Source: Macrostomum lignano
Taxonomy: Eukaryota
Direction: 5' to 3'
Length of the DNA: 64,000 nucleotides
Assembly: GCA_002269645.1 (NCBI GenBank)
Contig: NIVC01002447.1
Span: 1 to 64,000, forward strand
Shown: positions 23,080-43,400 of the stretch, one piece after another
Layout: the number at the start of each line of letters is the position of its first letter
Numbering within the stretch: position 1 is the first letter of the stretch
Translations under genes and position numbers: made by a program
Notes under the pieces: model-generated
The model's database searches: none
Seen by the model: the letters and a program-made list of their open reading frames with translations, nothing else
What the model was told of the DNA's origin: nothing

Positions 23080-23535
23080 TTAGTTAGCAGCCTTCCTTAG
23101 AATCGCAGCCTTTCTTCGAACCGCATTTAGTATTTTAGTCTTTAGTGCCGACAGTTCTATTCCACGAGATAACTCTCTAGAAGTTTTTTCCAGGATTAAC
23201 AATATTACTTGTAGAGACAACCCTGCCAATGCCCCTTTCAACCCGCCACGATATGCGGCAAGAAGCACCAGCGGATGGAATACGAGTAGCCGACCAACCA
23301 ATTTCAACTGCCACGGATTCTCTGCCTTTTCCGTGACGTACATCTTCATAGCCTCGACAGGATTCCAGCAGTTATTTAGAAGAAAACTGTACTTGTCTTT
23401 GCTACAGGCTTCTATTAGCCCTTTCAGCGTCTTCGGTTCGTTTGACCGTGCGGCATTCACAGATTCAGTGGTCGTGAAATCCTTTTTCTCATCCTCGCTG
23501 TTTATCTTGACAAGGTTGACAACCTTTGTCGCCAC
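23080..23535 (-). CDS. Orphan ORF or terminal exon (~151 aa) with a hydrophobic segment and a basic C-terminus
   Basis: Long stop-free frame in AT-rich DNA. AG immediately before the GTG at 23535; AATAAA ~55 bp after the stop. No ATG at the 5' end, and no family recognised. Confidence 0.5.
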   Translation of the reverse strand: MATKVVNLVKINSEDEKKDFTTTESVNAARSNEPKTLKGLIEACSKDKYSFLLNNCWNPVEAMKMYVTEKAENPWQLKLVGRLLVFHPLVLLAAYRGGLKGALAGLSLQVILLILEKTSRELSRGIELSALKTKILNAVRRKAAILRKAAN

Positions 23536-24004
23536 CTTTTCGATAGAGTTATATAACTTTATACATCATATAAGACAATAATGTTATGCAAAAAGCTTCT
23601 TAAATCATTCTTTTGGTACAAATATCTCACAGAATGCTATGTTGCATTCACAGGTTTTATAAATAAATTAAAAAATTAAGCGGTGCACATTTTAGCAGAA
23701 TAAAATGAAAAGAAGATGCAGTGTGAAGAAAAATAATTAAGAGTGTACTAGCTGTATTTTACAGTTACAGACCAAAAAGGGACTAGAGTGTACAATAAAG
23801 CGCTTTTTGAGTACAGCGAATTTTCTAGAATTTTCTATAGAATTACTAAGATGGATTTTCCGGGGAATTTCCTCGCTTGAAATATATAAGCATGATGCGC
23901 GTATGTGGAAACGGGCGGCATGTGGATAGCTTTTCAGAAAATTCTCTGCTTGTGTTCAATTCCATGTACATGAAAGTGAGACTTCAAAGCTGAAATCATT
24001 GATC

Positions 24005-25184
24005 ATGTAAGCTGCACACGCTCATAAGTCTAATGTGTTTTTATCCATTTCATCCAATGTATAAAATGAACTGAATGCTTCAAGTACTATAATTTAATGC
24101 ATGTAACAAACTTTCAGGCGCGTTACTCTGGTGGCCGCCATTTTCTTTGTTTTCACACTTTGCTTCGTGAAAGAGGCGCATGGGGGGCCTTCCGTTATCC
24201 CATTTGCGTAAGAGCGCTTGTGTTTGTTTCTCAGACCGTTTGTGTATCATTTTAATTTATTTACTTCATTTTAAAACCGACTAGGTGGGTCCGGCAATAC
24301 GGGAGACTGGCCTGGGCAGTGAGCAAGTGCTTGGGCAAGTCAGTTTTGCCAGTGAATGCAAACAAACTGAGGCACATATTTGGCTTTGGGAAACATCTTT
24401 TCGACGACAAAATGACGCTGTTTATGGATATATTTTTTTATAATCTGACTTAAAGAAGATGATTTATATTTAGAAACATTTAAAAAGTACCCAAAATACG
24501 ATTTAAAAATCAACGCGTGCAGCATAAGCCATCAAAACACCCAATTAGCTTTTATATATTAGTGTTTTATACTAAAAATGAAAAATGTATGTTTGTATGC
24601 AATTAGTGTTACTAAAAAGAGTAATTTAGGCACAATTTTCGGAGACAGCAAAGTGCTGCTCAATCAATGAGATAAGGACTAAACAGATGCATAGAAGGAG
24701 ATCACGTGATTCGTGAATTCGTGAGACCTCTTTGCTTCGTGAAAGAGGCGCATGGGGGGCCTTCCGTTATCCCATTTGCGTAAGAGCGCTTGTGTTTGTT
24801 TCTCAGACCGTTTGTGTATCATTTTAATTTATTTACTTCATTTTAAAACCGACTAGGTGGGTCCGGCAATACGGGAGACTGGCCTGGGCAGTGAGCAAGT
24901 GCTTGGGCAAGTCAGTTTTGCCAGTGAATGCAAACAAACTGAGGCACATATTTGGCTTTGGGAAACATCTTTTCGACGACAAAATGACGCTGGCTGCAAC
25001 AGCTGTTGATCTCGTCACTGACTTGAACCCTGGCACAAAATATGCCAAGACTTTTGTCAGAATGACCCTGACAACAGGCGAACTCGTTTACATTGCCTAC
25101 ATAGTGCTGAACGGAGGGTATGCAGCAATTGGAACGGCCTATATTTCAGAAAAGCTTGCGGATGTTCTAGAGAAGCGTTGCTAA
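24005..25184 (+). CDS. Small secreted protein, 139 aa, if spliced join(24005..24006,24118..24207,24857..25184); toxin-like C-terminal domain
   Basis: AT|GTAAGC..TTTCAG|G rebuilds the ATG. Exon 2 encodes the signal peptide MRVTLVAAIFFVFTLCFVKEAHG and ends at a GTAAGA donor (24208). The distal exon 3 (CTAG acceptor, 24856) is in frame to TAA (420 nt total). The proximal exon-3 copy (24285) is truncated: ..DDKMTLFMDIFFYNLT*. TATATAAG at 23883. Confidence 0.7.
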
Positions 25185-26200
25185 AGATCGAGGGATAAAA
25201 ATTGATTCAGCAGGTGCACCGACAGTCTAAATAGACATTCGCTTTGAAACAAAGTACCCGAGCAGATATTCGAACAAGTCACTCGATATCCATGCACTTC
25301 CTCTCTCAATACTACTCTGCTAGCTGTTAATTATACATAAACCTGCTTATTTAACATAAGCTTCGGTTGTGCGATTATGTCGCTTTAAAGTGCGCCTCGA
25401 TCCTGACTCTAACGATCGATATTCGCTTTGAAGAATGTATCCGTTTTGTTATTACGGTTCAAGTTTATAATTGTTAATATTTCGTTAACTGTTTATGCAG
25501 CCCCAAAAATCATTTACCAGAATATACTCGCACTGTTGATTTCCAGATATAATTTTCTCCCTCAATACTACTCGGCTAGGTATTTACTATACATTACTAT
25601 ACATTACTATTACTATAGTAATGTGTATTTACTATACACATTACTATACACAATTTCGCTTAATAATAACTAAAAAAAATATGAGCCTAAAAACTAAAGG
25701 AACTTCAACACTGACCGACTCGCTACTGCATACGTTATTTACTCAGTATACTTGGTTAAATGTTTTATTTAAGCAAGCACAGTAACAGTAAGCCATGGGC
25801 ACAAGACTACTGGGCTACACCCCGTCCCACCCAATTAATGCCCTACAGAAGACTGACATGCAAAAAAGTCAATCATAAGTCTTGCTACATGATGTTATGG
25901 AACTCTGCGAACAGTTTATGGATATATTTTTTTATAATCTGACTTAAAGAAGATGATTTATATTTAGAAACATTTAAAAAGTACCCAAAATACGATTTAA
26001 AAATCAACGCGTGCAGCATAAGCCATCAAAACACCCAATTAGCTTTTATATATTAGTGTTTTATACTAAAAATGAAAAATGTATGTTTGTATGCAATTAG
26101 TGTTACTAAAAAGAGTAATTTAGGCACAATTTTCGGAGACAGCAAAGTGCTGCTCAATCAATGAGATAAGGACTAAACAGATGCATAGAAGGAGATCACG
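24158..26200. repeat. Local tandem duplication with deletion: A(24158-24420) B(24420-24706) filler A'(24730-24992) C B'(25914-26200)
   Basis: A/A' and B/B' appear identical by eye. The 23-nt filler tgattcgtgaattcgtgagacct repeats the nearby ttcgtga motif. Confidence 0.92.
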
Positions 26201-26854: not shown

Positions 26855-28225
26855 TCAGGCCACAGCGTCGGCTCCGTCAGCCGCATGGGCCTGGCCGGCG
26901 CCGAAGATCTTGCCGAGCCCAGCCTGGCCGTGGTCATAGTTTCTCTGGCGCTCAAACTCCACCATGGCCAGCGGCCGGAAGTTCATCACGTAGCCACGGC
27001 GCCAGCAGTCGGAGGTGTTGCCCCGGCTGTAGTGCAGGGTCTGGCCCGAGTGCAGGGTGCAGTCGCCCGGCTGCAGCTCGCACGGCACCCCGTCAGCCTC
27101 GGAGCCGTCGCAGGTGAGCACGTGGGTGCCCGCAGCGGCGGAGCGGTGCGGCAGCAGAGGTCGGCGGTGAGAGCCGGGGCCGAACCACATGCAGCCGTTG
27201 TCAAGCCAGGTGGCGTCCACAGCCAGCCAGCAGGACACGGCCCTCTTATCCGGCATGTCCAACCAGTAGGCGGCGTCAGCGTGCCAGGGCGTTGGCGTGT
27301 TTGACTGCGGCGGCTTGGCCAGCATCATGTCGAAGTCAAAGTCCATGTCGGGGCCGAGCAGCGCCCGGGCCAGCAGGCGGAGGCGCTGGCGAGCCGGACA
27401 GGTGTCTGCGAGGCCCTACGCCAGAGAGAGAGGGATTTGAGTGCGTTTACAATGCGACTCGTGAATGCTCATAAAATCTGCTTGATGGATGAGAAACCTG
27501 TGCGTGCGATGCGAAGGCATGTCCGAGATTGCCTACTGAACAGTAGCAAGACATAATACCTCAGACTTAAATACCCCAGACTAAAATACCCAGACTTAAA
27601 TACCCCAGACTAAAATACCTCAGGCTTAAATACCCCAGACTAAAATACCTCAGAGTAAAATATTCCAGACTAAAATATCCTTGGATTAAAATATCCACAT
27701 ACCTAAATATCCCCATACTAAAATGTCCCAAAATTAAAATATACCAAACTAAAATATTGAAGACTAAAATATCCCAGACTAAAATATCCCAAACTAAAAT
27801 ATCCCAGATTAAAATATCCCAGACTAAAATACCCCAGACTAAAATATCCCAAAACCCGAATTCGAAACCCTTTGCCGCACCTGCACGAACAGACTGGGCC
27901 ACATGATCTGGCAGATGTTCTCCTTGAACTTGGCATTCTGCACAGCCTGCGTGTTCCCCAAGTCGTGCCGGTGGCTGCTGGCGTCGATGCTGCCGCTGAG
28001 CAGCCGGTCGTACAGCTCACCGAGCAGCGCCACCTCCGAGGGCGTCAGAACGCCGCGGACAACCGCGTAGCCATCGTTGTCGAACTGGGCCTTGAGCTCG
28101 TCGACTGGCTGGGCAGCCAGCCAGGCCTCGGGGCTCGCGCTGTCCGCAGGCCACAGCACCGTGGCCTGGTGGCAGCTTCCCAGGCGCTGCTCATCCGATA
28201 GCGTGGGTCGGTGCGACTGCGACAT
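26855..28225 (-). CDS. PhyH-family (phytanoyl-CoA dioxygenase-like) 2OG-Fe(II) oxygenase; complement(join(26855..27415,27881..28225)), ~301 aa
   Basis: FDNDGYAVVRGVL; DFDMMLAKPP..TPWHAD (HxD); DNGCMWFGPGSH; LHYSRGN..RR (distal His and 2OG-binding Arg). Phase-0 GT-AG intron. The start codon is uncertain. Confidence 0.92.
27555..27855. repeat. Degenerate 15-19-bp repeat (aaaatatcccagact) in the PhyH intron
   Basis: Visible tandem units; they explain the spurious WDILV/YFSLG ORFs. Confidence 0.9.
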
Positions 28226-28427
28226 TCCCGATCGGGGCTGCAGGATGGAGTTGTGGGCGCTGCCCACGCTCAGTCCAGGTGTTTTGCGGGGCCGGGTTTA
28301 TCAGTTATCAGGGGGAGTATTTAGAGTGCTCACAGAGAGGATCAAATGGTGTTCCAGGGCGAATCAATTGGTTTTTAATGACATTTTCTATTGGTGTTTC
28401 AGTTCAAACCAACGGGTACAGGGAGGA

Positions 28428-29030
28428 TATCGATGATACAATGGCGGATTTCAGGGTACAGGGGCGGATCTCGATGATACAATGGCGGATTTCAGGGTAC
28501 AGGGGGGATCTCGATGATACAATGGCAGATCTAGGGGTACAGGGGCGGATCTAGATGATACAATGGCGGATCTAGGGGTACAGGGGCGGATCTAGATGAT
28601 ACAATGGCGGATTTCAGGGTACAGGGGCGGATCTCGATGATACAATGGCGGATCTAGGGGTACAGGGGCGGATCTAGATGATACAATGGCGGATCTTAGG
28701 GTACAGGGGCGGATCTCGATGATACAATGGCGGATTTCAGGGTACAGGGGCGGATCTCGATGATACAATGGCGGATCTAGGGGTACAGGGGCGGATCTCG
28801 ATGATACAATAGCGGATTTCATGGTACAGGGGCGGATCTCGATGATACAATAGCGGATTTCAGGGTACAGGGGCGGATCTCGATGATACAATGGCGGATC
28901 TTAGGGTACATGGGCGGATCTCGATGATACAATGGCGGAATTCATGGTACAGGGGCGGATCTCGATGATACAATGGCGGATTTCATGGTACAGGGGTTGA
29001 TCTCGATGATACAATGGCGGATTTCAGGGT
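28428..29030. repeat. 41-bp minisatellite (gggtacaggggcggatctcgatgatacaatggcggatttca)
   Basis: Period 41 (28454, 28495); about 14 units. Confidence 0.95.
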
Positions 29031-30005
29031 ACAGGGGCGGATCTAGGGGAACAGGGGCGGATCTAGCGGTACAGGGGCGGATCAAGGGGAACAGAGGCGG
29101 ATCTAGCGGTACAGGAGCGGATCTAGCGGTACAGGGGCGGATCTAGGGGAACAGGGGCGGATCTAGCGGTACAGGGGCGGATCTAGGGGAACAGGGGCGG
29201 ATCTAGCGGTACAGGGGCGGATCTAGGGGAACAGGGGCGGATCTAGGGGAACAGGGGCGGATCTAGCGGTACAGGGGCGGATCTAGGGGAACAGGGGCGG
29301 ATCTAGCGGTACAGGGGCGGATCTAGGGGAACAGGGGCGGATCTAGGGAAACAGGGGGGATCTAGGGGAACAGGGGCTGATCTAGCGGTACAGGGGCGGA
29401 TCTAGGGGAACAGGGGCGGATCTAGCGGTACAGGGGCGGATCTAGGGGAACAGGGGCGGATCTAGCGGTACAGGGGCGGATCTAGGGGAACAGGGGCGGA
29501 TCTAGCGGTACAGGGGCGGATCTAGGGGAACAGGGGCGGATCTAGGGAAACAGGGGGGATCTAGGGGAACAGGGGCGGATCTAGGGAAACAGGGGGGATC
29601 TAGGGGAACAGGGGCGGATCTAGGGAAACAGGGGGGATCTAGGGGAACAGGGGCTGATCTAGCGGTACAGGGGCGGATCTAGGGGAACAGGGGCGGATCT
29701 AGCGGTACAGGGGCGGATCTAGGGGAACAGGGGCGGATCTAGCGGTACAGGGGCGGATCTAGGGGAACAGGGGCGGATCTAGCGGTACAGGGGCGGATCT
29801 AGGGGAACAGGGGCGGATCTAGCGGTACAGGGGCGGATCTAGGGGAACAGGGGCGGATCTAGCGGTACAGGGGCGGATCTAGGGGAACAGGGGCGGATCT
29901 AGCGGTACAGGGGCGGATCTAGGGGAACAGGGGCGGATCTAGGGAAACAGGGGGGATCTAGGGGAACAGGGGCTGATCTAGCGGTACAGGAGGGATCTAG
30001 ATGAT
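29030..30005. repeat. 20-bp G-rich minisatellite with alternating variants (acaggggcggatctagggga / acaggggcggatctagcggt)
   Basis: About 48 units, mostly A/B alternating; shares acaggggcggatct with the adjacent 41-mer. Confidence 0.95.
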
Positions 30006-30389
30006 ACAAGGGCGGATCCAACAGTGTTAAAGATTTAAGTATCAATGGTACCAGAAATGAAACTAAAGCAACAGTGACACAAACTAAGCATTTCTCAATG
30101 TAGCGGCTGAGTGTACAGGTAAAATTTGCAAGAAATTGAATTAAGTCAGTAAAATTGGGTCAATCAATAACAGGCTCTTATTTAAACTAGATATATTTGC
30201 TGAAATATTTGCTAACCACGACAGTAAAAACTTTATTAAATAATTGAAAGCACAAAACCGGCTGTTTAGTGATCTGTGAGACTACAGAGGTTAAATTTTC
30301 ATTTGATTAATTTATGATTTTGAACTGAAGAACAACTGCTAATTTATATGCAGATTAGAATACAGTATGGAAACTGAGATGGGGGACTT

Positions 30390-30690
30390 CATTAGATAAG
30401 GATGAGAGTAGATCAGATAGGGATGAGAGTTGATCAGATAGGGATAAGAGTAGAATAGATAGGGATGAGAGTAGATCAGATAGGGATGAGAGTAGATCAG
30501 ATAGGGGTGAGAGTAGATCAGATAGGGATGAGAGAAGATCAGATAGGGATGAGAGTAGATCAGATAGGGATGAGAGTAGATCAGATAGGGATGAGAGTAG
30601 ATCAGATAGGGATAAGAGTAGATCAGCTGGGGATGAGAGTAGATCAGATAGGGGTAGGAGTAGATTACATAAGGATGAGAGTAGATCAAA
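30390..30690. repeat. 21-bp minisatellite (gatagggatgagagtagatca), ~14 units
   Basis: Explains the YLIYSHP/RVDQIGM repeat ORFs; lies ~70 bp past the stop codon of the left PRDM10-like copy. Confidence 0.95.
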
Positions 30691-30758
30691 AAGAGACGAG
30701 AGATAAGATTGGAGCCTGAAGCGATTTGAGGTGCATCTAAAAAATGGAAGCCGGCAGC

Positions 30759-33700
30759 TCAGCACCGTGGGCCGGCAGTGGCAGGTTGGTCGCTGCCGGC
30801 CTCCCGTATGGCGCCCTCGAGCCAGTCGGTTTCATCGGTGGCGGGCTGGTGGCAACCGGCCGACTCGCCAGCGGCTGCCCTGGCCGTCAGCTCGTCCACG
30901 ATGGCGGACGCGTCATCCTCCAGAGAGGCCGTGGAGGCGCCGGCGGTGACGGCGGAGTTGAACAGCACAGGCACGCTGGCAGAGCAGAGTAGGAACTGGA
31001 CATTGGGAGCCTCCTGCTGCTGCTGCTGCTCAGCTGGCAGGTCAACCCCGGCTCCGTTTCCAGTGAGCTCTCGCAATGCCTGGGTGAGCAGATCCTCTGA
31101 GTCCTCGCTGAACTGGCAGATCTGCTGCTGCTGCTGCGGCTGCTGAAGCTGCGGGTGCGGCAGGCCGCTGGCGATGGCGGCGCGGATTTGGGCGCGGGTT
31201 GGCGGCGCCAGAGCGGGATGGGCCTGGCGCATGTGCCAGGTGAGCTTCTCCTTCTTGGCGTACTGGCGCGGACAGTGCGGGCAGCAGTGCGCCATGCTGA
31301 TCACGGATGGCGCCGTTGAGACCACCATGATGGGCGCGGATGAGGATGCTGAGGAGCCAGATGCGGATTCGAGTCCGGGACCAGCGAGGCAGCAACCATT
31401 GAGGCGACGCTGCGTGGCGGCGGCAGGTGCAGGTCGGGCGGGCTGGCGACCCCGTGCACCCGCTGCAGGTGCGCCTGGCGCTGCTGGTCGGAGCGGAAGA
31501 GGCTGCCGCACAGCGGGCAGGGCAGGTTGTTGGGCCGGCTGCGCACCTGCTGCAGCAGCGGCAGGTTCAGCTCGCTCACGCTGCTCAGCGGGATTTCCGG
31601 GTGCACGCGGACCTGATAGGGATCAAGTGATCAAGGTGCCGAGGTCAAGGGTCAAGGTGTTGATGTCAAGGTGTAGGGGTCAAGGTGTAGGGGTCAAGGT
31701 GTAGGGGTCAAGGTGTAGGGGTCAAGGTGTAGGGGTCAAGGTGTAGGGGTCAAGGTGTAGGGGTCAAGGTGTAGGGGTCAAGGTGTAGGGGTCAAGGTGT
31801 AGGGATCAAGGTGTAGGGATCAAGGTGTAGGGGTCAAGGTGTAGGGGTCAAGGTGTAGGGGTCAAGGTGTAGGGGTCAAGGTGTAGGGGTCAAGGTGTAG
31901 GGATCAAGGTGTAGGGGTCAAGGTGTAGGGGTCAAGGTGTTGATGTCAAGGTGTAGGGGTCAAGGTGTAGGGGTCAAGGTGTAGGGGTCAAGGTGTAGGG
32001 GTCAAGGTGTAGGGGTCAAGGTGTAGGGGTCAAGGTGTTGATGTCAAGGTGTAGGGGTCAAGGTGTAGGGGTCAAGGTGTAGGGATCAAGGTGTAGGGAT
32101 CAAGGTGTAGGGGTCAAGGTGTAGGGGTCAAGGTGTAGGGGTCAAGGTGTAGGGGTCAAGGTGTAGGGGTCAAGGTGTAGGGATCAAGGTGTAGGGGTCA
32201 AGGTGTAGGGGTCAAGGTGTAGGGGTCAAGGTGTTGATGTCAAGGTGTAGGGGTCAAGGTGTAGGGGTCAAGGTGTAGGGATCAAGGTGTAGGGGTCAAG
32301 GTGTAGGGGTCAAGGTGTAGGGGTCAAGGTGTAGGGTCAAGGTGTAGGGGTCAAGGTGTTGATGTCAAGGTGTAGGGGTCAAGGTGTAGGGGTCTAGGTG
32401 TAGGGGTCAAGGTGTAGGGGTCAAGGTGTAGGGTACGTCAAGGTGTAGGGTACGTCAAGGTGTAGGGTACGTCAAGGTTTTGATGCCAATGTGCTGCGGT
32501 CAAAGTGCTGAGTGAGTTTGTGGCGCTAAGATCCAGACGTACAGCACTAGACTCAAAGAGAATACCAATACAAACAGGAACATCATATATTGAACTACAA
32601 ACCATATGATTGACCAGCACCCCACGCCGCTTGAAGCCCAGACTGCAGTCGCGGCATTTGTAAATAAACCGTTCAAAATCGGTGGAGGGCACCTGCGGCA
32701 CGCATCTCGGCTTCTTGGGCCGTCCGGGGAGGTCGCCGACGCCTTTGCTGCCCTTGCAACGGCCCAGCCTGAGGTGAGCGGCGAGTTTGTCTCTGCGCGA
32801 GAACCTGCGGCCGCAGCCCTGGCAGACTGGCTGCTGGCTGACCGGCAGGTTGCCGGCTGAGCTGCCAACGCCGCTGCGGCAAACGCTGGAGGCGGCCAGA
32901 TGGTCGCGCAGGCGAGACCGCTTGGCGAACCTCCGACCGCAGTGGTCGCAGGCAAACTGCTGGGGCGGCTTCAGCTGCTGACTGATGCCGGAGCTGTCGG
33001 TGCCGCCGCCGCTGTGGCAGTTGCGCTGGTGCCGCTTGGCCTGGGCGAGGGTGGCGGCCCGGCGGTGGCAGACGCGGCAGGGAAAGTCGCCGAGCGCAGG
33101 GTCCCGGTGGGCGGCCTCGTAGTGCCGGGCCAGCTGTCGGCGGCTGCGACTGCAGTGGCCGCAGAGCTGGCAGACCGGCTGTCCGAGGCCCTGGCAGTGC
33201 GACTTCAGATGGTTGCGGAGGCAGCCGGCACTGGGGCTGCGGGTTAAATACATACTTTCGATACATATCGGCTACCTGAAATAAATTACTTTCGATACAT
33301 ATCGGCTACCAGAAAACAACTTACTTTTGATACATATCAAATACCTGAAATAAATTTCTGTCGATACATATCGGCTACTTGAAAACAACTTACTTTTGAT
33401 ACATATCAAATACCTGAAATAAATTTCTGTCGATACATATCGGCTACTTGAAAATAACTTAATTTTGATACATATCAAATACCTGAAAAGCATGCTTTCA
33501 ATACATATCGGCTACCTTAAAAACTACACTTTCGATACATATCGGCTACGTCCTGAAGAAAACTATATCGGCTACATCGGCTACATGAAGCTCACGCAGC
33601 ATTTTTTATCCAGTAGACTGATTCAACTCTCCCTCACCTGTCGCCAAAGCTGCACAGCGGGCAGGAGTCGAACACGGGCCCTGCCGGGTCCATGCGGACG

Positions 33701-36680
33701 CCGTGCGCCTCGGCCGCGTGGCGCAGCAGCTCGGGCTGTCCGGGGAAGGCCAAGCCGCAGGCTGAGCAGCCGAAGTCGCAGGCGGCTGACAGGCCGGCGA
33801 TGCGAGGCTCCGGCAGCGAGTGGGCCGCGTCCACGTGCTGGGCCAGCTGGCGGGCGCCGCCCTGTAGCAAAGCGCATAATGTACTTTTTGCATGTAAATG
33901 TCGCTTTTTGTATACTTTTCTACGCCTAGAGTACTGCTCCCATCATGCAGGTGTTAATCCCTAATCAGAGATCCCATCATGCAGGTGTTAATCCCTAATC
34001 AGAAAATCCCATCATACAGGTGTTAATCCCTAATCAGAGATCCCATCATGCAGGTGTTAATCCCTAATCGGAGATCCCATCATGCAGGTGTTAATCCCTA
34101 ATCAGAGATCCCATCATGCAGGTGTTAATCCCTAATCAGAAAATCCCATCATACAGGTGTTAATCCCTAATCAGAGATCCCATCATGCAGGTGTTAATCC
34201 CTAATCAGAGATCCCATCATGCAGGTGCTAATCAGACATCAAGCAGGATTCAGCGGCAGCTCACCTGGAGCACGGCGCAGCAGACCGGACAGTCAACTCG
34301 GCCGCCATGTCTCAGGGAGTCGGCAAAGCCGGCAGCTGCATCAACCTGGACGCTGGCCACGTCATCCAGCTGCACATCGACTTTGACGCAGCCGCGCGAG
34401 TGCAAGCCGGCCAGAGCGGGATGCGGCATCACCAGGCCGCAGCGGCGACAGCCGAACTCCAAGCCGGCTGAGGCCAGCGCTGCCTGCAGCCTCCTGCAGA
34501 ACTCCGCCGGCTGAAGGCGAGTCCGGCGGCGCTGCAGCCGGCGACGAATTGAGCTGATGCTGGCGCTGCCGCGGCCGCCCTTACCGGTGCCACTGATGTC
34601 GGAGCTGACGAGCTCGCTTTGACCGGATTGAGCGGCGCCTTCACCTGCCTGCAGCTGCCGCGGCTCCGAATCTGAGGCGGTGGCGGCCGCGGCGTCCTGC
34701 ACAGCGGCGGGTCGGCGCTGGCACAGCCGGACCTTCAGCTGGTCGAGAGTGGCGGTGGACACCCGGCCGATGGCTGCAGCAGTGCTCTGGCGCTGATGGT
34801 GAGCGAGAGTGAGTGAGTGAGTGAGTAAGTGAGTGAGTGAGTGAGTAAGTGAGTGAGTAAATGAGTGAGCGAGTAAGCAAGTGAGTGAGTGAGTGAGTGA
34901 GTGAATGAATGAGTGAGTGAGTGAGTGAGTTAGTGAGTGAGTGAGTGAGTGAGTGAGTGAGTGAGAGAGAGAATGAGTGAGTGAGTGAGTGAGGAAGTAA
35001 GTGAGTGAATGAGTGAGTGAGTAAATAAGTGGGCCGCTTTCACAAGACCGAAATTCTTCTCAAAACAATTGGGAAATGCGGTGCGTAATGTTATTCTTGT
35101 GAAGCTCTGGAATGTGTGAATGACAAAAGGAAAGTTTTACGACTAAGAATGAGAATTTGTATGAATCACACACCATGTGTGAATGACAATAGGTGTGTGA
35201 ATAAAATGATTAGAGTTTTTGAAATGAGTAAATTTGAGCTCACTCTGAATGTGCTTGATCAACATTTACAGCCTCACTTGTGAAAGCCACCGCCCCACAG
35301 TGAGCAGGCATCAACTGCCGTCTCACTCACCATTTCACCGCTACAAGCTGCAGACCGAGCCAGCTGCTCTCCGAGAGCCACCTCAGACAGCCGACTCCGA
35401 GCCATCGCCAGCAGCCTCTGCGCCCTGACAGCTGTCAGAGCAGCCACCGATGCCTGCCGCCCAGCCTCTGCCCTGGCAACGCATCTACCAGCCACTCCAC
35501 TCCGGCAGAAGCCACTCCGCGCCAGCCGGGCCATCCAGCGGTTCAACGCGAAGCGCAGCTCCTCGCCAGCCGGCACAGACTGGGTGCAGCGAAAGTACAG
35601 CTGGGAGCCGCGCTGATGCGCCAGTAGGTTGTGCCTGCGCTGCGAGCTGCAGGTCTGCAGCAGGTGAAGGGGTGGCGCCTTTTGATTGATAGATTTTACA
35701 GCTTATGCAGTTAAGGTGATTCTCATTGAGCGGTTTTAGCCACCGACTTAGTGTGACACTGCTATGCTGATCCATGTGACACTGCTATGCTGATCTGTGT
35801 GACACTGCTATGCTGATCCATGTGACACTGCTATGCTGATCCCTGTGACACTGCTATGCTGATCCATGTGACACTGCTATGCTGATCTGTGTGACACTGC
35901 TATGCTGATCCATGTGACACTGCTATGCTGATCCATGTGACACTGTTATGCTGATCCATGTGACACTGCTATGCTGATCCATGTGACACTGCTATGCTGA
36001 TCCATGTGACACTGCTATGCTGATCTGTGTGACACTGCTATGCTGATCCATGTGACACTGCTATGCTGATCCATGTGACACTGTTATGCTGATCCATGTG
36101 ACACTGCTATGCTGATCCATGTGACACTGCTATGCTGATCCATGTGACACTGTTATGCTGATCCATGTGACACTGTTATGCTGATCCATGTGACACTGCT
36201 ATGCTGATCCATGTGACACTGCTATGCTGATCCATGTGACACTGCTATGCTGATCCATGTGACACTGCTATGCTGATCCATGTGACACTGCTATGCTGAT
36301 CCATGTGACACTGTTATGTTGATCCATGTGACACTGCTATGCTGATCCATGTGACACTGCTATGCTGATCTGTGTGACACTGTTATGCTCACCTTCTGAG
36401 GCTGCAAGAACACAAGCCAGTTGCACTTATTTACATCAGTCAGATCAAAATATTGCAATCCCCGAGCTGTCAGTAGTGGCACAGGAAACTGTCCTGTGCA
36501 ATGTTGGTCAACCAGAGGAGCCTCCAGTGGGCCAAGCACTGCACCACGGGGCACAGGCTTGCGGGCAAACAGCCCAAGACAGCGAGGGTGAATGTGCGAC
36601 TGGGCCACAATGAACTGCTCTCTGGGAAGGCTTTTCATTGCCTGAGATGATCCAGTCCCTTTCAGACAGGCTGGTGGCAT
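30759..36680 (-). CDS. PRDM10: PRDM10-like PR/SET + C2H2 zinc-finger protein, left copy; exons 36680-36393, 35678-35331, 34792-34265, 33861-33638, 33236-32603, 31612-30759; 1-bp frameshift at ~31365
   Basis: PR domain: SLP..GLFARKPVPRGAVLGP..CNWLVFLQP|..HNLLAHQRGSQLYFRCTQSVPAGEELRF. Multiple C2H2 fingers. YKCRDCSLGFKRRGVLVNHM|VRVHPEIPLSSVSELNLP matches my recollection of PRDM10 [25 protein letters not shown]..ELTLP. All introns are GT-AG and phase-compatible. This copy has aatccgca where the right copy has aatcccgca. Confidence 0.85.
31625..32478. repeat. 14-bp minisatellite (ggggtcaaggtgta), ~60 units, PRDM10 left copy intron 5
   Basis: Direct; marked by gtgttgatgtcaag variants. Confidence 0.97.
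33250..33585. repeat. Degenerate ~34-bp repeat (gatacatatcggctac...) in intron 4; counterpart at 40200-40440
   Basis: Direct. Confidence 0.85.
33940..34232. repeat. 34-bp minisatellite (gcaggtgttaatccctaatcagagatcccatcat), ~9 units, intron 3
   Basis: Direct; one CCCTAA/TTAGGG per unit. Confidence 0.97.
34800..35025. repeat. (TGAG)n microsatellite, intron 2; counterpart at 42133-42497
   Basis: Direct. Confidence 0.95.
35752..36388. repeat. 23-bp minisatellite (gatccatgtgacactgctatgct), ~27 units, intron 1
   Basis: Direct; begins a few bases after the GTGAGC donor. Confidence 0.98.
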
Positions 36681-37406: not shown

Positions 37407-40400
37407 TCAGCACTGCGGGCCGGCAGCGGCAGGCCGGTCGCTGCCGGCCTCCCGTATGGCGCCCTCGAGCCAGTCGGTTTCATCGGCGGCGGGCTGGTGG
37501 CAACCGGCCGACTCGCCAGCGGCTGCCCTGGCCGTCAGCTCGTCCACGATGGCGGACGCGTCATCCTCCAGATAGGCCGTGGAGGCGCCGGCGGTGACGG
37601 CGGAGTTGAAAAGCACTGGGACGCTGGCAGAGTTGACCAGCAGGAACTGGACATTGGGAGCCTCCTGCTGCTGCTGCTGCTCAGCTGGCAGGTCAACACC
37701 GGCTCCGCTTCCAGTGAGCTCTCGCAATGCCTGGGTGAGCAGATCCTCTGAGTCCTCGCTGAACTGGCAGATCTGCTGCTGCTGCTGCTGCTGTGGCTGC
37801 TGAAGCTGCGGGTGCGGCAGGCCGCTGGCGATGGCGGCGCGGATTTGGGCGCGGGTTGGCGGCGCCAGAGCGGGATGGGCCTGGCGCATGTGCCAGGTGA
37901 GCTTCTCTTTCTTGGCGTACTGGCGCGGACAGTGCGGGCAGCAGTGCGCCATGCTGATCACGGATGGCGCCGTTGAGACCACCATGATTGGCGCGGATGA
38001 GGAGGCTGAGGATCCCGATGCGGGATTCGAGTCCGGGACCAGCGAGGCAGCAACCATTGAGGCGACGCTGCGTGGCGGCGGCAGGTGCAGGTCGGGCGGG
38101 CTGGCGACCCCGTGCACCCGCTGCAGGTGCGCCTGGCGCTGCTGGTCGGAGCGGAAGAGGCTGCCGCACAGCGGGCAGGGCAGGTTGTTGGGCCGGCTGC
38201 GCACCTGCTGCAGCAGCGGCAGGTTCAGCTCGCTCACGCTGCTCAGCGGGATTTCCGGGTGCACGCGGACCTGATAGGGATCAAGTGATCAAGGTGCCGA
38301 GGTCAAGGGTCAAGGTATCAGGGGTCAAGGTGAAGGGGTCAAGGTGTAGGGGTCAAGGTGTAGGGGTCAAAGTTTAGGGGTCAAGGTGTAGGGATCAAGG
38401 TGTAGGGGTCAAGGTGTAGGGGTCAAGATGTAGGGGTCAAGGTGTAGGGGTCAAGGTGTAGGGGTCAAGGTGTAGGGGTCAAGGTGTAGGGGTCAAGTTG
38501 TAGGGGTCAAGGTGTAGGGTACGTCAAGGTGTAGGGTACGTCAAGGTGTAGGGGTCAAGATGTTGGGGTCAAGGTGTAGGGGTCAAGGTGTAGGGGTCAA
38601 GGTGTAGGGGTCAAGGTGTAGGGGTCAAGGTGTAGGGGTCAAGGTGTAGGGGTCAAGGTGTTGGGGTCAAGGTGTAGGGGTCAAGGTGTAGGGGTCAAGG
38701 TGTAGGGGTCAAGATGTAGGGGTCAAGGTGTAGGGGTCAAGGTGTAGGGGTCAAGGTGTAGGGGTCAAGGTGTAGGGGTCAAGGTGTAGGGTACGTCAAG
38801 GTGTAAAGGTCAAGGTGTAGGGGTCAAGGTGTAGGGATCAAGGTGTAAAGGTCAAGGTGTAGGGTACGTCAAGGTGTAGGGTACGTCAAGGTGTAGGGGT
38901 CAAGGTGTAGGGGTCAAGGTGTAGGGGTCAAGGTGTAGGGGTCAAGATGTTGGGGTCAAGGTGTAGGGGTCAAGGTGTAGGGGTCAAGGTGTAGGGGTCA
39001 AGGTGTTGCGGTCAAGGTGTAGGGGTCAAGGTGTAGGGGTCAAGGTGTAAAGGTCAAGGTGTAGGGATCAAGGTGTAGGGGTCAAGGTGTAGGGGTCAAG
39101 GTGTAGGGGTCAAGATGTAGGGGTCAAGGTGTAGGGGTCAAGGTGTAGGGGTCAAGGTGTAGGGGTCAAGGTGTAGGGGTCAAGTTGTAGGGGTCAAGGT
39201 GTAGGGTACGTCAAGGTGTAGGGTACGTCAAGGTGTAGGGGTCAAGGTGTAGGGGTCAAGATGTTGGGGTCAAGGTGTAGGGGTCAAGGTGTAGGGGTCA
39301 AGGTGTAGGGGTCTAGGTGTAGGGGTCAAGGTGTAGGGGTCAAGGTGTAGGGGTCAAGGTGTAGGGGTCAAGGTGTAGGGTACGTCAAGGTGTAGGGTAC
39401 GTCAAGGTGTAGGGTACGTCAAGGTTTTGATGCCAATGTGCTGCGGTCAAAGTGCTGACTGAGTTTGTGGCGCTAAGATCCAGACGTACAGCACTAGACT
39501 CAAAGAGAATACCAATACAAACAGGAACATCATATATTGAACTACAAACCATATGATTGACCAGCACCCCACGCCGCTTGAAGCCCAGACTGCAGTCGCG
39601 GCATTTGTAGATAAACCGTTCAAAATCGGTGGAGGGCACCTGCGGCACGCATTTCGGCTTCTTGGGCCGCCCGGGGAGGTCGCCGACGCCTCTGCTGCCC
39701 TTGCAGCGGCCCAGCCTGAGGTGAGCGGCGAGTTTGTCTCTGCGCGAGAACCTGCGGCCGCAGCCCTGGCAGGCTGGCTGCTGGCTGACCGGCAGGTTGC
39801 CGGCTGAGCTGCCAACGCCGCTGCGGCAAACGTTGGAGGCGGCCAGATGGTCGCGCAGGCGAGACCGCTTGGCGAACCTACGACCGCAGTGGTCGCAGGC
39901 AAACTGCTGGGGCGGCTGGTGCTGCTGACTGATGCCGGAGCTGTCGGTGCCGCCGCCGCTGTGGCAGTTGCGCTGGTGCCGCTTGGCCTGGGCGAGGGTG
40001 GCGGCCCGGCGGTGGCAGACGCGGCAGGGAAAGTCGCCGAGCGCGGGGTCCCGGTGGGCGGCCTCGTAGTGCCGGGCCAGCTGTCGGCGGCTGCGACTGC
40101 AGTGGCCGCAGAGCTGGCAGACCGGCTGTCCGAGGCCCTGGCAGTGCGACTTCAGATGGTTGCGGAGGCAGCCGGCACTGGGGCTGCGGGTTAAATACAT
40201 ACTTTCGATACATATCGGCTACCTGAAATAAATTACTTTCGATACATATCGGCTACCTGAAATAAATTACTTTCGATACATATCGGCTACTTGAAAATAA
40301 CTTAATTTTGATACATATCAAATGCCTGAAAAGCATGCTTTCAATACATATCGGCTACCTTAAAAACTACACTTTCGATACATATCGGCTACGTCCTGAA

Positions 40401-43400
40401 GATAACTTAATTTCGATACATATCGGCTACATCGGCTACATGAAGCTCACGCAGCATTGTTTATCCAGTAGACTGATTCAACTCTCCCTCACCTGTCGCC
40501 AAAGCTGCACAGCGGGCAGGAGTCGAACACGGGCCCTGCCGGGTCCATGCGGACGCCGTGCGCCTCGGCCGCGTGGCGCAGCAGCTCGGGCTGTCCGGGG
40601 AAGGCCAAGCCGCAGGCTGAGCAGCCGAAGTCGCAGGCGGCTGACAGGCCGGCGATGCGCGGCTCCGGCAGCGAGTGGGCCGCGTCCACGTGCTGGGCCA
40701 GCTGGCGGGCGCCGCCCTGTAGCAAAGCGCATAATGTACTTTTTGCATGTACATGTCGCTTTTTGTATACTTTTCTACGCCTAGAGTACTGCTCCCATCA
40801 TGCAGGTGTTAATCCCTAATCAGAGATCCCATCATGCAGGTGTTAATCCCTAATCAGAAAATCCCATCATACAGGTGTTAATCCCTAATCAGAGATCCCA
40901 TCATGCAGGTGTTAATCCCTAATCAGAGATCCCATCATGCAGGTGTTAATCCCTAATCAGAGATCCCATCATGCAGGTGTTAATCCTTAATCACAGATCC
41001 CATCATGCAGGTGTTAATCCCTAATCGGAGATCCCATCATGCAGGTGTTAATCCCTAATCAGAGATCCCATCATGCAGGTGTTAATCCCTAATCAGAGAT
41101 CCCATCATGCAGGTGTTAATCCCTAATCGGAGATCCCATCATGCAGGTGTTAATCCCTAATCAGAGATCCCATCATGCAGGTGTTAATCCCTAATCAGAA
41201 AATCCCATCATACAGGTGTTAATCCCTAATCAGAGATCCCATCATGCAGGTGTTAATCCCTAATCGGAGATCCCATCATGCAGGTGTTAATCCCTAATCA
41301 GAGATCCCATCATGCAGGTGTTAATCCCTAATCAGAAAATCCCATCATACAGGTGTTAATCCCTAATCAGAGATCCCATCATGCAGGTGTTAATCCCTAA
41401 TCGGAGATCCCATCATGCAGGTGTTAATCCCTAATCAGAGATCCCATCATGCAGGTGTTAATCCCTAATCAGAAAATCCCATCATACAGGTGTTAATCCC
41501 TAATCAGAGATCCCATCATGCAGGTGTTAATCCCTAATCAGAGATCCCATCATGCAGGTGCTAATCAGACATCAAGCAGGATTCAGCGGCAGCTCACCTG
41601 GAGCACGGCGCAGCAGACCGGACAGTCAACTCGGCCGCCATGTCTCAGGGAGTCGGCAAAGCCGGCAGCTGCATCAACCTGGACGCTGGCCACGTCATCC
41701 AGCTGCACATCGACTTTGACGCAGCCGCGCGAGTGCAAGCCGGCCAGAGCGGGATGCGGCATCACCAGGCCGCAGCGGCGACAGCCGAACTCCAAGCCGG
41801 CTGAGGCCAGCGCTGCCTGCAGCCTCCTGCAGAACTCCGCCGGCTGAAGGCGAGTCCGGCGGCGCTGCAGCCGGCGACGAATTGAGCTGATGCTGGCGCT
41901 GCCGCGGCCGCCCTTACCGGTGCCACTGATGTCGGAGCTGACGAGCTCGCTTTGACCGGATTGAGCGGCGCCTTCACCTGCCTGCAGCTGCCGCGGCTCC
42001 GAATCTGAGGCGGTGGCGGCCGCGGCGTCCTGCACAGCGGCGGGTCGGCGCTGGCACAGCCGGACCTTCAGCTGGTCGAGAGTGGCGGTGGACACCCGGC
42101 CGATGGCTGCAGCAGTGCTCTGGCGCTGATGGTGAGCGAGAGTGAGTGAGTGAGTGAGTGAGCGAGAGTGAGTGAGTGAGTGAGTAAGTGAGTGAGTGAG
42201 TGAGTAAGTGAGTGAGTGAGTAAATGAGTGAGCGAGTAAGCAAGTGAGTGAGTGAGTGAGTGAGTGAGTGAATGAATGAGTGAGTGAGTAAGTGAGTGAG
42301 TGAGTAAATGAGTGAGCGAGTAAGCAAGTGAGTGAGTGAGTGAGTGAGTGAGTGAGTGAATGAATGAGTGAGTGAGTGAGTGAATGAATGAGTGAGTGAG
42401 TAAGTGAGTGAGTGAGTGAGTGAGTGAGTGAGTGAGAGAGAGAATGAGTGAGTGAGTGAGTGAGGAAGTAAGTGAGTGAATGAGTGAGTGAGTAAATAAG
42501 TGGGCCGCTTTCACAAGACCGAAATTCTTCTCAAAACAATTGGGAAATGCGGTGCGTAATGTTATTCTTGTGAAGCTCTGGAATGTGTGAATGACAAAAG
42601 GAAAGTTTTACGACTAAGAATGAGAATTTGTATGAATCACACACCATGTGTGAATTACAATAGGTGTGTGAATAAAATGATTAGAATTTTTGAAATGAGT
42701 AAATTTGAGCTCACTCTGAATGTGCTTGATCAACATTTACAGCCTCACTTGTGAAAGCCACCGCCCCACAGTGAGCAGGCATCAACTGCCGTCTCACTCA
42801 CCATTTCACCGCTACAAGCTGCAGACCGAGCCAGCTGCTCTCCGAAAGCCACCTCAGACAGCCGACTCCGAGCCATCGCCAGCAGCCTCTGCGCCCTGAC
42901 AGCTGTCAGAGCAGCCACCGATGCCTGCCGCCCAGCCTCTGCCCTGGCAACGCATCCACCAGCCACTCCACTCCGGCAGAAGCCACTCCGCGCCAGCCGG
43001 GCCATCCAGCGGTTCAACGCGAAGCGCAGCTCCTCGCCAGCCGGCACAGACTGGGTGCAGCGAAAGTACAGCTGGGAGCCGCGCTGATGCGCCAGTAGGT
43101 TGTGCCTGCGCTGCGAGCTGCAGGTCTGCAGCAGGTGAAGGGGTGGCGCCTTTTGATTGATAGATTTTACAGCTTATGCAGTTAAGGTGATTCTCATTGA
43201 GCGGTTTTAGCCACCGACTTAGTGTGACACTGCTATGCTGATCCATGTGACACTGCTATGCTGATCCATGTGACACTGCTATGCTGATCCATGTGACACT
43301 GCTATGCTGATCCCTGTGACACTGCTATGCTGATCCATGTGACACTGCTATGCTGATCTGTGTGACACTGCTATGCTGATCCATGTGACACTGCTATGCT

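Follow-up and report, generated by a model that had tools for sequence, protein, structure and literature searches.

The window analyzed here, a stretch of 64,000 nucleotides of DNA from the flatworm Macrostomum lignano, contains a gene of three exons encoding a precursor of 139 amino acids, made up of a putative 23-residue signal peptide and a basic mature protein of 116 residues, a length that agrees with the original prediction. Positions 24005-24006, 24118-24207 and 24857-25184, when joined, form an open reading frame of 420 nt (139 aa), with a start codon split AT/G at 24006/24118 and a TAA stop codon at 25182-25184. The donor of the first intron reads ...GATCAT/gtaagc (24005-24012) and its acceptor ...ctttcag/GCGCGTT (24117/24118). 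The features of the locus and their basis are as follows.

23883..23889, + strand: possible TATA box, TATATAA, seen in the sequence some 45 nt before 23930, where the annotated transcript begins; its promoter role is putative.
23930..24006, + strand: exon 1, with the 5' UTR and the AT of the start codon (24005-24006); the P0001 translation runs through it into the ORF, and it lies in the annotated gene range.
24007..24117, + strand: intron 1, 111 nt, GTAAG...CAG, splitting the ATG; seen in the sequence and also at the paralogous locus L001 (90% identity).
24118..24207, + strand: exon 2, with the G of the ATG, the remainder of the putative signal peptide (to 24184) and mature GPSVIPF(A); from translation and tblastn of the model against the window.
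24158..24420, + strand: first copy of a duplicated block, which runs from the end of exon 2 through a 77-nt intron into the 5' portion of exon 3; from a repeat search.
24208..24856, + strand: intron 2 as the full protein requires it; it contains a duplicated insert of 572 nt and would be 77 nt (24208-24284) without it.
24420..24706, + strand: copy of downstream positions 25914-26200, 100% identical; from the repeat search.
24857..25184, + strand: exon 3, from A31/W32 to C139, plus the TAA (25182-25184); from translation and tblastn.
24879..24920, + strand: cationic amphipathic helix RLAWAVSKCLGKSV before the toxin core, about residues 39-52; AF2 places a helix at mature residues 7-24.
24927..24968, + strand: NANKLRHIFGFGKH motif, residues 55-68, with K58, H61, I62 and H68 invariant in family alignments; it matches bacterial NKLxHIF..H.
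24927..25145, + strand: Ntox35-like core, N55 to I127; from the hhalign span and from Pfam Ntox35 positions 1-76 of 78 on a subgroup consensus.
25131..25142, + strand: GTAY, closing the last predicted strand, with T124 and Y126 invariant and G123 nearly so; from alignment, AF2 and hhalign.
25146..25181, + strand: C-terminal helix SEKLADVLEKRC, ending at the nearly invariant Cys139; from AF2 and alignment, and lacking in the bacterial domains.

The gene is real and is spliced as originally proposed, because a GenBank gene model derived from RNA-seq has the same junction and 100% identity. This entry, BOX15_Mlig001727g2 (P0001, 164 aa), is identical to our model over all 139 residues, has the same exon junctions, and crosses the boundary between exons 1 and 2 in the same way (...SKLKSLIM/RVTLV). 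The annotation of M. lignano is based solely on genome-guided RNA-seq assembly (PMC5730564), so that a transcript spliced from 24006 to 24118 is implied by the annotation itself. The gene had been described as hidden by an intron within the ATG; the ATG is indeed split and the gene is absent from the ORF list, but since GenBank already annotates it, as a "hypothetical protein", it is unnamed rather than hidden. A literature search found no publication on its locus tag. A trans-spliced leader was considered as the source of the ATG and rejected, as the frame is wrong and exon 1 is present in the annotated transcript.

The repeat search of the window showed that 24158-24420 is 100% identical to 24730-24992, and that the inserted copy at 24420-24706 is followed by 23 nt of filler (24707-24729). 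It is from these two duplicated blocks that the productive form of intron 2 is deduced to be 24208-24856. Use of the identical upstream acceptor at 24284 would lead, on translation, to a premature stop after ...DDKMTLFMDIFFYNLT, and many transcripts of the insert-carrying copy could be non-productive. The insert, which the original prediction overlooked, is either real or an assembly artefact.

A second copy of the gene occurs at a syntenic locus on another contig (L001), with 87% protein identity. A Fibrinogen_C gene and a PRDM-type zinc-finger gene adjoin both copies, and intron 2 of L001 is in the same position but is short (about 80 nt) and lacks the insert. This paralogue, which shows a G-run and an AT/C junction, has lost its secretory start; dN/dS between the two copies is 0.38. 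The contig that carries the window gene is 211 kb long, and the gene is flanked in both directions by animal genes (Fibrinogen_C, PRDM zinc finger, Peptidase_M28 and PhyH). Although the 100%-identical duplicated blocks are typical of assembly problems, and the nearest non-worm relative (P0004) sits on a metagenomic contig, the chance that the gene stems from contaminating bacteria or protists, or from faulty assembly, rather than being the flatworm's own is negligible, given its two GT-AG spliceosomal introns, one of them within the ATG, the flanking animal genes and synteny, the second locus, and the gene model derived from RNA-seq.

By inspection, the N-terminus resembles a signal peptide, MRVTLVAAIFFVFTLCFVKEAHG/GPS, in which MR is followed by a hydrophobic stretch of 16 residues and KEAHG/G, with A at -3 and G at -1; in the alignment, most homologues have hydrophobic leaders of a similar kind. 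The mature protein has a pI of about 9. Its N-terminal helix carries a charge of +4 and has a hydrophobic moment of 0.52, a value attained by 0.6% of shuffles; the codon for Cys46, at 24900-24902, lies within this helix. The sequence IGTAYI occupies residues 122-127. AF2 models were of low confidence (pLDDT 44.5 without an alignment; pLDDT 50.6 and pTM 0.46 with 18 sequences), and in the latter the order of elements, H33-40, E57-65, E70-78, E84-91 and E96-101, fits a helix followed by four strands. Foldseek searches of the PDB with these low-confidence models gave a best E of 0.49, with BECR toxins appearing only amid noise.

About 25 relatives of the protein were found, all of them small stand-alone proteins and most with a putative signal peptide. 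An exhaustive phmmer search gave 6 true matches, and a profile search gave 21 (E between 1e-48 and 1e-16). These relatives belong to Paramecium, Symbiodiniaceae (among them Fugacium), Amphidinium and the rotifer Rotaria (where the gene was found in three assemblies), or lie on environmental contigs. In the family alignments, K, H, I, H, G, T and Y are invariant, apart from G123, which is only nearly so; both motif histidines are invariant across 19 family members, and the cysteine pair is nearly conserved. The distribution is patchy, covering ciliates, dinoflagellates, one rotifer genus and M. lignano, and the broad vertical metazoan family that would have spoken against a bacterial origin was not found. 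Two scans of viral contigs revealed no relative, and thus lend no support to a giant virus as vector. Literature searches found no earlier description of this family in eukaryotes.

Database searches with the worm protein itself gave little. There was no match in Pfam, including Ntox35, even at E<=10, and none in NCBIfam or among PDB sequences except a chance match to a myosin light chain (E=1.6); the family profile found only CHMP1B noise in the PDB. The Pfam gathering threshold for Ntox35 (PF15534) is 23.6 bits, and no natural family member reaches it, the best relative scoring 14.5 bits. Sub-threshold Ntox35 matches were nevertheless present, in one register, in three relatives (P0018, P0029 and P0023). 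A subgroup consensus scored 21.0 bits (E=5.5e-4) over positions 1-76 of the 78 in the Ntox35 profile, a level near noise because the same consensus also gives a spurious-looking match to Cas_APE2256 (E=0.0024). Ntox35 is the only Pfam family matched repeatedly, and in the same register throughout, by members of different clades. When 185,579 bacterial and archaeal genomes were searched for worm-type motifs by pattern and tblastn, the 38 pattern matches were about as many as we estimate for chance, and none was confirmed. The best plasmid match in tblastn was a chance one, located inside an imidazolonepropionase gene.

A genome scan with the pattern NKLxHIFxxKH gave 75 matches, of which 72 were junk reading frames. 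The remaining three are C-terminal domains of Rhs proteins from metagenome-assembled genomes of Acidimicrobiales (L020), Bacteroidota (L057) and Burkholderiales (L060); RHS repeats were confirmed (E=1.8e-49 and 1.6e-11). With these three as seeds, which had thus been retrieved by a motif derived from the hypothesis under study, 37 bacterial homologues were found, one of them named 'filamentous hemagglutinin [Caballeronia sp.]'. Pfam Ntox35 was matched by 19 of 24 members of this bacterial family; of the three seed domains, two matched at 21-22 bits and the third did not match. The eukaryotic HMM gave scores of up to 27.4 bits on bacterial members. In hhalign, the eukaryotic and bacterial families aligned over 72 columns with a probability of 96.1% (E=3.1e-9), and at 93.8% (P=1.7e-7) after sequences that might bias the comparison had been removed. 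Column shuffling (30 shuffles, best P=0.042) and reversal were both negative.

The two families align collinearly along 70-72 columns that begin with the first motif and end with the terminal GTA[FY][IV]. Worm H61 and H68 align with H15 and H21, which are invariant in the bacterial family, and T124 of GTAY, where the fourth predicted strand ends, aligns with the T of bacterial GTAF; the second His and the Thr are separated by almost the same distance in the two families (56 and 60 residues). The toxin pattern named in the original prediction, NKLxHIF..H with a terminal GTA(Y/F)(I/V), consists of residues conserved in both families. Together, these comparisons show that the eukaryotic family shares homology with the bacterial toxin domain over its full length, at the level at which sequence profiles can be compared.

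Could the resemblance nonetheless be one of motif alone, arising by convergence or chance in a secreted protein born in eukaryotes, for example one like an antimicrobial peptide or a pheromone, with a structural His motif? The hhalign score is packed into 16 motif columns (N-terminal part, P=6.5e-9), the family has no database match above a curated threshold, the predicted fold is of low confidence (AF2 pLDDT 51), with no Foldseek match below E=0.49, and the unrelated Cas_APE2256 match to the consensus is similarly weak. However, the part of the alignment after the second His gives P=0.0034 by itself, which is below the best value from shuffles; collinearity and the His-Thr spacing extend beyond the motifs; the Ntox35 matches recur in a single register in different clades; and the residues by which Ntox35 is defined are precisely the conserved ones. 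We therefore consider convergence quite improbable.

BECR stands for Barnase-EndoU-ColicinE5/D-RelE. Ntox35 is a predicted RNase domain of this fold that forms the C-terminal end of polymorphic toxins in bacteria; its defining features are a pair of N-terminal histidines ('H, KH') and an S/T in the C-terminal strand, and it was listed in bacteria only (Zhang et al. 2012, PMC3482391). The Thr of worm GTAY corresponds to the conserved S/T of that C-terminal BECR strand (PMC3482391). The worm protein shares with Ntox35 a core of about 75 residues, two histidines 6-7 residues apart in an N-terminal helix (the second follows a K in the worm, GKH), a Thr that is conserved in the last strand, the predicted order of a helix and then four strands, and profile-profile homology to the Ntox35-like family of Rhs C-terminal domains. 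It differs in scoring below the gathering threshold, in being a free-standing eukaryotic protein, encoded by a gene with introns and preceded by a putative signal peptide, in its additional N- and C-terminal helices and cysteine pair, and in having neither an Rhs, filamentous-haemagglutinin or MafB carrier nor an adjacent immunity gene. The bacterial Rhs domains have NKLxHIF(G)xxxH...G..(I/V/L)GTA(F/Y)(I/V) across the full domain as well, but they follow the Rhs DPxG boundary in proteins of more than 1,200 residues, stop right after GTAFxP, and have just 21-25% identity to the eukaryotic family in aligned columns. Polymorphic toxin systems place the toxin at the C-terminus of a large carrier beside an immunity gene; here the neighbors are Fibrinogen_C, PhyH and PRDM zinc-finger genes, and the worm gene would derive from such a system without belonging to one.

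From this analysis, we conclude, with a probability of roughly 0.65, that the presumably secreted basic protein of 116 residues has a core, N55-I127, descended from an Ntox35-like toxin domain of bacterial Rhs/filamentous-haemagglutinin toxins. The interpretation originally offered is thus largely supported, and none of the three outcomes named there as refuting it was obtained. The expected similarity to toxin profiles is present, and the Ntox35-like assignment holds in profile comparison and through the bacterial members, though not by the Pfam threshold. Horizontal acquisition of a domain domesticated with introns and a signal peptide is upheld as to the bacterial toxin homology; the flatworm, however, was probably not the inventor of the architecture after a direct transfer from bacteria, because helices flanking the core behind a putative signal peptide are common to the protist and rotifer homologues. 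A single acquisition from a bacterium by a eukaryote is argued for because the architecture is shared across the eukaryotic family; thereafter the domain would either have spread from one eukaryote to another or have been lost on a massive scale.

The worm protein is most likely a secreted RNase of His-His-Thr type directed against microbes or prey. The signal peptide would be removed in the ER, and the protein exported or sent to a digestive or secretory compartment. In line with the mechanism proposed for Ntox35, RNA would be cleaved by His61 and His68 of the motif helix, which are the predicted catalytic histidines, together with Thr124 of the last beta-strand. The producer would require no immunity protein, because the enzyme would never meet its cytosol. 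A Cys46-Cys139 disulfide probably ties the cationic amphipathic N-terminal helix to the C-terminal helix, both of them specific to the eukaryotic proteins; these helices may stabilize the protein outside the cell and help it to bind or cross microbial membranes. The target would most likely be bacteria, or other prey or competitors; every known carrier is a eukaryote that is phagotrophic or feeds on microbes.

A diffusible toxin of Staphylococcus aureus, S8-BetaH-Ntox35, offers a parallel (Mwangi et al., bioRxiv 10.1101/2025.07.24.666436; mBio 2026). In this toxin the substitution H205A abolishes killing, and intoxication is assisted by a cationic amphipathic helix that is released (bioRxiv 10.1101/2025.07.24.666436). 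Both proteins have a Sec/ER-type signal peptide (a putative one in the worm, read by inspection) and would be diffusible rather than contact-dependent; both have two histidines in an N-terminal helix (H199 and H205 in S. aureus, H61 and H68 in the worm) and, preceding the RNase core, a cationic amphipathic helix, which in the worm is predicted only. The worm protein differs in lacking a BetaH domain, an S8 protease partner and an immunity protein; it gives no sign of proteolytic activation, and sequence similarity is detectable only in the core. We put forward tentatively, as a possibility that we think doubtful, that the family is a self-delivering antibacterial RNase, with the amphipathic helix clamped by the disulfide to the Ntox35 core and entering bacterial cells without a carrier, which passed horizontally among microbe-feeding eukaryotes unrelated to one another (ciliates, dinoflagellates, bdelloid rotifers and macrostomid flatworms) after one Rhs-type acquisition.

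The domain may instead have been repurposed, as a digestive or scavenging RNase of the gut or food vacuole or as a non-toxic RNA-binding or signaling protein, and so not be a weapon. The carriers are all phagotrophs or feed on microbes, a translocation domain such as the Rhs shell is absent, and recruitment of toxin domains to non-conflict roles in eukaryotes has been described (Zhang et al., PMC3482391). We judge this unlikely: the invariant His-His-Thr set argues that catalysis has been retained, and the cationic amphipathic helix, together with the basic pI, is reminiscent of the antimicrobial delivery seen in S. aureus. Digestive and antimicrobial roles are, moreover, compatible with each other.

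The Dae amidases of ticks are one case of a bacterial toxin enzyme domesticated by eukaryotes. Others are Tox-GHH in teneurins, Tox-ParBL1 and Het-C, among several domains (PMC3482391). The worm family resembles these in being a bacterial conflict enzyme found patchily in eukaryotes, with acquired introns and a putative signal peptide, but differs from them in fold and chemistry. It is most likely a previously unnamed eukaryotic variant of a known bacterial toxin type, with an architecture of its own consisting of a putative signal peptide, flanking helices and cysteine pair. If so, an RNase of the BECR class would join the short list of interbacterial toxins adopted by animals and protists, and its very patchy distribution would make a clean case for the spread of a gene from eukaryote to eukaryote. 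If bactericidal, a small RNase without a carrier would be relevant to the field of toxin delivery. About 25 "hypothetical" proteins in five eukaryotic lineages would gain a testable function, and since M. lignano is amenable to transgenesis and RNAi, a role in gut or epidermal defense or in the killing of prey would be directly testable in the worm.

Re-reading and translation of the gene bore out the coordinates, the quoted peptides and the mature length given in the original prediction. The start codon is split by an intron, with AT at 24005-24006 followed by gtaagc and the ATG restored by cag/G at 24117/24118. Joining 24005-24006, 24118-24207 and 24857-25184 yields a 420-nt ORF encoding 139 aa, with leader MRVTLVAAIFFVFTLCFVKEAHG followed directly by GPSVIPFAWVRQYGRLAWAVSKCLGKSVLPVNANKLRHIFGFGKHLFDDKMTLAATAVDLVTDLNPGTKYAKTFVRMTLTTGELVYIAYIVLNGGYAAIGTAYISEKLADVLEKRC. 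By inspection, residues 1-23 resemble a classical signal peptide, with MR ahead of a hydrophobic core of 16 residues and A-H-G at its end, and the mature protein is 116 aa. The gene had also been described as invisible to the ORF track, which holds for a prokaryote-style ORF list but not for the public annotation: a protein search found a 100% identical GenBank entry, P0001 (BOX15_Mlig001727g2, "hypothetical protein"), on the 211-kb contig NIVC01002447.1 at coordinates matching the window. P0001 contains ...SKLKSLIM/RVTLV, so that its translation passes through exon 1 and over the AT/G junction. Because the GenBank annotation of the M. lignano assembly was made solely from a genome-guided RNA-seq transcriptome (StringTie, TACO and TBONE; PMC5730564), the exon junctions rest on transcript data.

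The gene contains a duplicated block. The segment 24158-24420, which spans the last part of exon 2, a 77-nt intron and the first part of exon 3, is repeated with 100% identity at 24730-24992; thus, the productive intron 2 is 24208-24856. In translation, use of the first, identical acceptor gave a protein truncated just past the His motif. Positions 24420-24706 are a 100% copy of 25914-26200, a 287-nt intergenic stretch downstream of the gene, and are followed up to 24729 by a 23-nt filler, tgattcgtgaattcgtgagacct, which has ttcgtga in common with the adjacent exon sequence. The insert looks like a recent template-switch duplication or an assembly artefact.

A second locus, L001 (contig NIVC01003073.1), lacks the insert and is simply built, with a short intron of about 80 nt; it encodes P0002, a paralogue 87% identical to the window protein. 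At L001:7990-8640 the split start codon reads AT/C and the G-run is one G shorter than in the window copy; therefore the signal peptide lacks a start and is not in frame. P0002 as annotated begins at an internal ATG and is leaderless, with the predicted catalytic residues all intact. Possible explanations are a pseudogene, an assembly error in the homopolymer or a cytosolic form of the protein. In exon 3, the two copies are separated by a dS of 0.19 and a dN of 0.07 (dN/dS 0.38). Both loci are flanked by a Fibrinogen_C gene and a PRDM-type zinc-finger gene, and contamination was ruled out by the introns, the synteny and the presence of two copies. Other features of the window are as follows.

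23080-23535, minus strand: unannotated 151-aa ORF, ending about 400 nt upstream of the window gene's transcript start
26855-28267, minus strand: PhyH (phytanoyl-CoA dioxygenase) gene of at least 2 exons, from ORFs and Pfam
28443-30018, 30394-30702 and 31649-32000+: large minisatellite arrays
31100-36500 versus 37800-43400: tandem segmental duplication, about 6.7-7.3 kb, 98-100% identity

The 151-aa ORF had no Pfam match; it contains ...YSFLLNNCWNP... and its C-terminal half is hydrophobic. The PhyH gene is missing from the contig's called-gene list. Its ORF 26855-27346 matches PF05721 (E=2e-24) and is separated by a 15-nt minisatellite (27555-27851) from ORF 27839-28267, which resembles the N-terminal part. 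The arrays at 28-32 kb (units of 20/40 nt x 39-78, 21 nt x about 15 and 14 nt x >25) account for a strong GC skew there. The segmental duplication, inside or adjoining the PRDM-type zinc-finger gene region, includes pairs of 271-aa and 170-aa ORFs and internal satellite arrays.

When 1.84 billion representative proteins were searched exhaustively with phmmer, only six true relatives emerged (E 5e-57 to 7e-6); P0003 and P0009, also in the list, appear spurious, their alignments being confined to brief segments of long, repetitive proteins. Searching 5.8 billion proteins with a profile gave 21 relatives (E 7e-48 to 9e-16). All relatives are 70-164 aa long, and all family members are listed as either hypothetical or unnamed. 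Those with a named source come from Paramecium tetraurelia, P. pentaurelia, P. octaurelia, Fugacium kawagutii (Symbiodiniaceae), Amphidinium carterae and the bdelloid rotifer Rotaria magnacalcarata; among the matches there were no animals other than M. lignano and Rotaria, and none was attributed to bacteria. The Rotaria gene is without introns and was found in three assemblies, and on an environmental contig a close relative adjoins a Helitron. Most members have a hydrophobic N-terminal leader. In the numbering of the window precursor, K58, H61, I62, H68, G118, T124 and Y126 are invariant; the near-conservation of C46 and the terminal C139 suggests a disulfide. P0010, a P. octaurelia protein of 256 aa in a 90% cluster with P0005, is double the usual length; gene calling may have joined two tandem family genes. 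The closest non-Macrostomum relatives (40% identity) are P0008 and L003:1535-1873, on JGI metagenome contig Ga0310129_0015769; these carry INANKLKHIFGKAEH, the most bacterial-looking motif, and have no signal peptide. The L003 contig (53% GC) has dense short genes without Pfam matches; it could come from a protist, a large virus or another source, and may lie near the path by which the gene was transferred.

Ntox35 (PF15534) was the sole Pfam model matched repeatedly by the family, in each case with NMNK aligned to profile position 2. No eukaryotic member passed any Pfam threshold, and the family falls outside formal Ntox35 membership; the sub-threshold matches were P0018 (E=0.06), P0029 (E=0.11) and P0023 (E=0.22, positions 2-64 of 78). 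For the worm-like subgroup, a consensus sequence reached 21.0 bits (E=5.5e-4, positions 1-76 of 78), a level that is not proof, since the same consensus also matched the unrelated Cas_APE2256 at E=0.0024. Zhang et al. describe Ntox35 as a predicted BECR RNase, "H, KH", with two N-terminal histidines and a conserved S/T in the C-terminal strand, and list it only in bacteria (PMC3482391). Bacterial sequences were sought with a DNA pattern for NKLxHIFxxKH, run against 185,579 representative genomes. Of 75 matches, 72 were meaningless reading frames; the remaining three each form the C-terminal ~75 residues of a large protein, namely L020 (at least 1,235 aa), L057 (1,272 aa) and L060, the first two being RHS-repeat proteins (PF05593, E=1.8e-49 and 1.6e-11). 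A profile built from these three found 37 bacterial homologues, including a Caballeronia "filamentous hemagglutinin" and Mycobacterium and Clostridiales proteins. Ntox35 was matched by 19 of the 24 aligned bacterial members (best E 3.5e-5).

When the eukaryotic (A4) and bacterial (A8) alignments were compared with hhalign, they matched with a probability of 96.1% (E=3.1e-9) over 72 columns, from GvNmNKxxHI..H / NKLxHIF..H through gGxxxiGTaYv / dGxxkiGTAfi. The best of 30 column shuffles gave P=0.042 and the reversed alignment P=0.21; the motif part alone gave P=6.5e-9 and the part after the second His P=0.0034. Since pattern-based retrieval could bias the motif part, the comparison was rerun with protist and rotifer sequences only, against bacterial members that the pattern could not match (HIFGxxxH, no KH at +6); the result was 93.8% (P=1.7e-7, 70 columns). 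Under the eukaryotic HMM, members with this type of motif score at most 27.4 bits, which explains why the whole-database searches missed them. Homology of the eukaryotic family to the Ntox35-like Rhs/FHA toxin domain is thus well supported at the profile level, and the likeness to a bacterial toxin domain proposed in the original prediction is upheld.

AlphaFold2 models were of low confidence (pLDDT 44.5 without an alignment, 50.6 with 18 sequences). In mature numbering they place helices at 7-24, 33-40 (carrying K35 and H38) and 105-115, and strands at 57-65, 70-78, 84-91 and 96-101, with T101 closing the fourth strand. This order fits a "helix plus four-stranded sheet" to which flanking helices are added. 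In the PDB, Foldseek found no significant match to the model, so we can only infer the fold.

We propose that the precursor would enter the ER and lose its leader, and that the mature protein, which is basic with a pI of about 9, would then leave the cell or pass into a digestive or secretory compartment. RNA would be cleaved by H61 and H68 with help from T124 and perhaps K58, all predicted; in the S. aureus Ntox35 toxin, killing is abolished by H205A (bioRxiv 10.1101/2025.07.24.666436). Owing to co-translational export, no immunity protein would be needed. The eukaryote-specific N-terminal segment AWVRQYGRLAWAVSKCLGKS carries a charge of +4; its helical hydrophobic moment is 0.52, a value that 0.6% of shuffles attain, and homologues have similar segments, e.g. 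AILGKLIPAVVKCFGKR. To get at its target, the S. aureus toxin depends on a cationic amphipathic helix that is released (same preprint), and by analogy a membrane-homing role for the predicted helix of the window protein is plausible. The targets are probably bacteria or prey, as all carriers eat microbes. The leader, the two predicted flanking helices and the cysteine pair are shared among the eukaryotic proteins and absent from the bacterial domains, which suggests that the eukaryotic form arose once and then spread between eukaryotes or was extensively lost. No family copy was found in the viral contigs scanned.

Transfer of polymorphic-toxin domains to eukaryotes is already known (PMC3482391), and no new principle is at work in this family; neither that paper nor the other papers naming Ntox35 mention a eukaryotic RNase of the Ntox35 type. 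Its interest lies in toxin evolution and gene transfer between eukaryotes, in a tractable flatworm where these ideas are testable.
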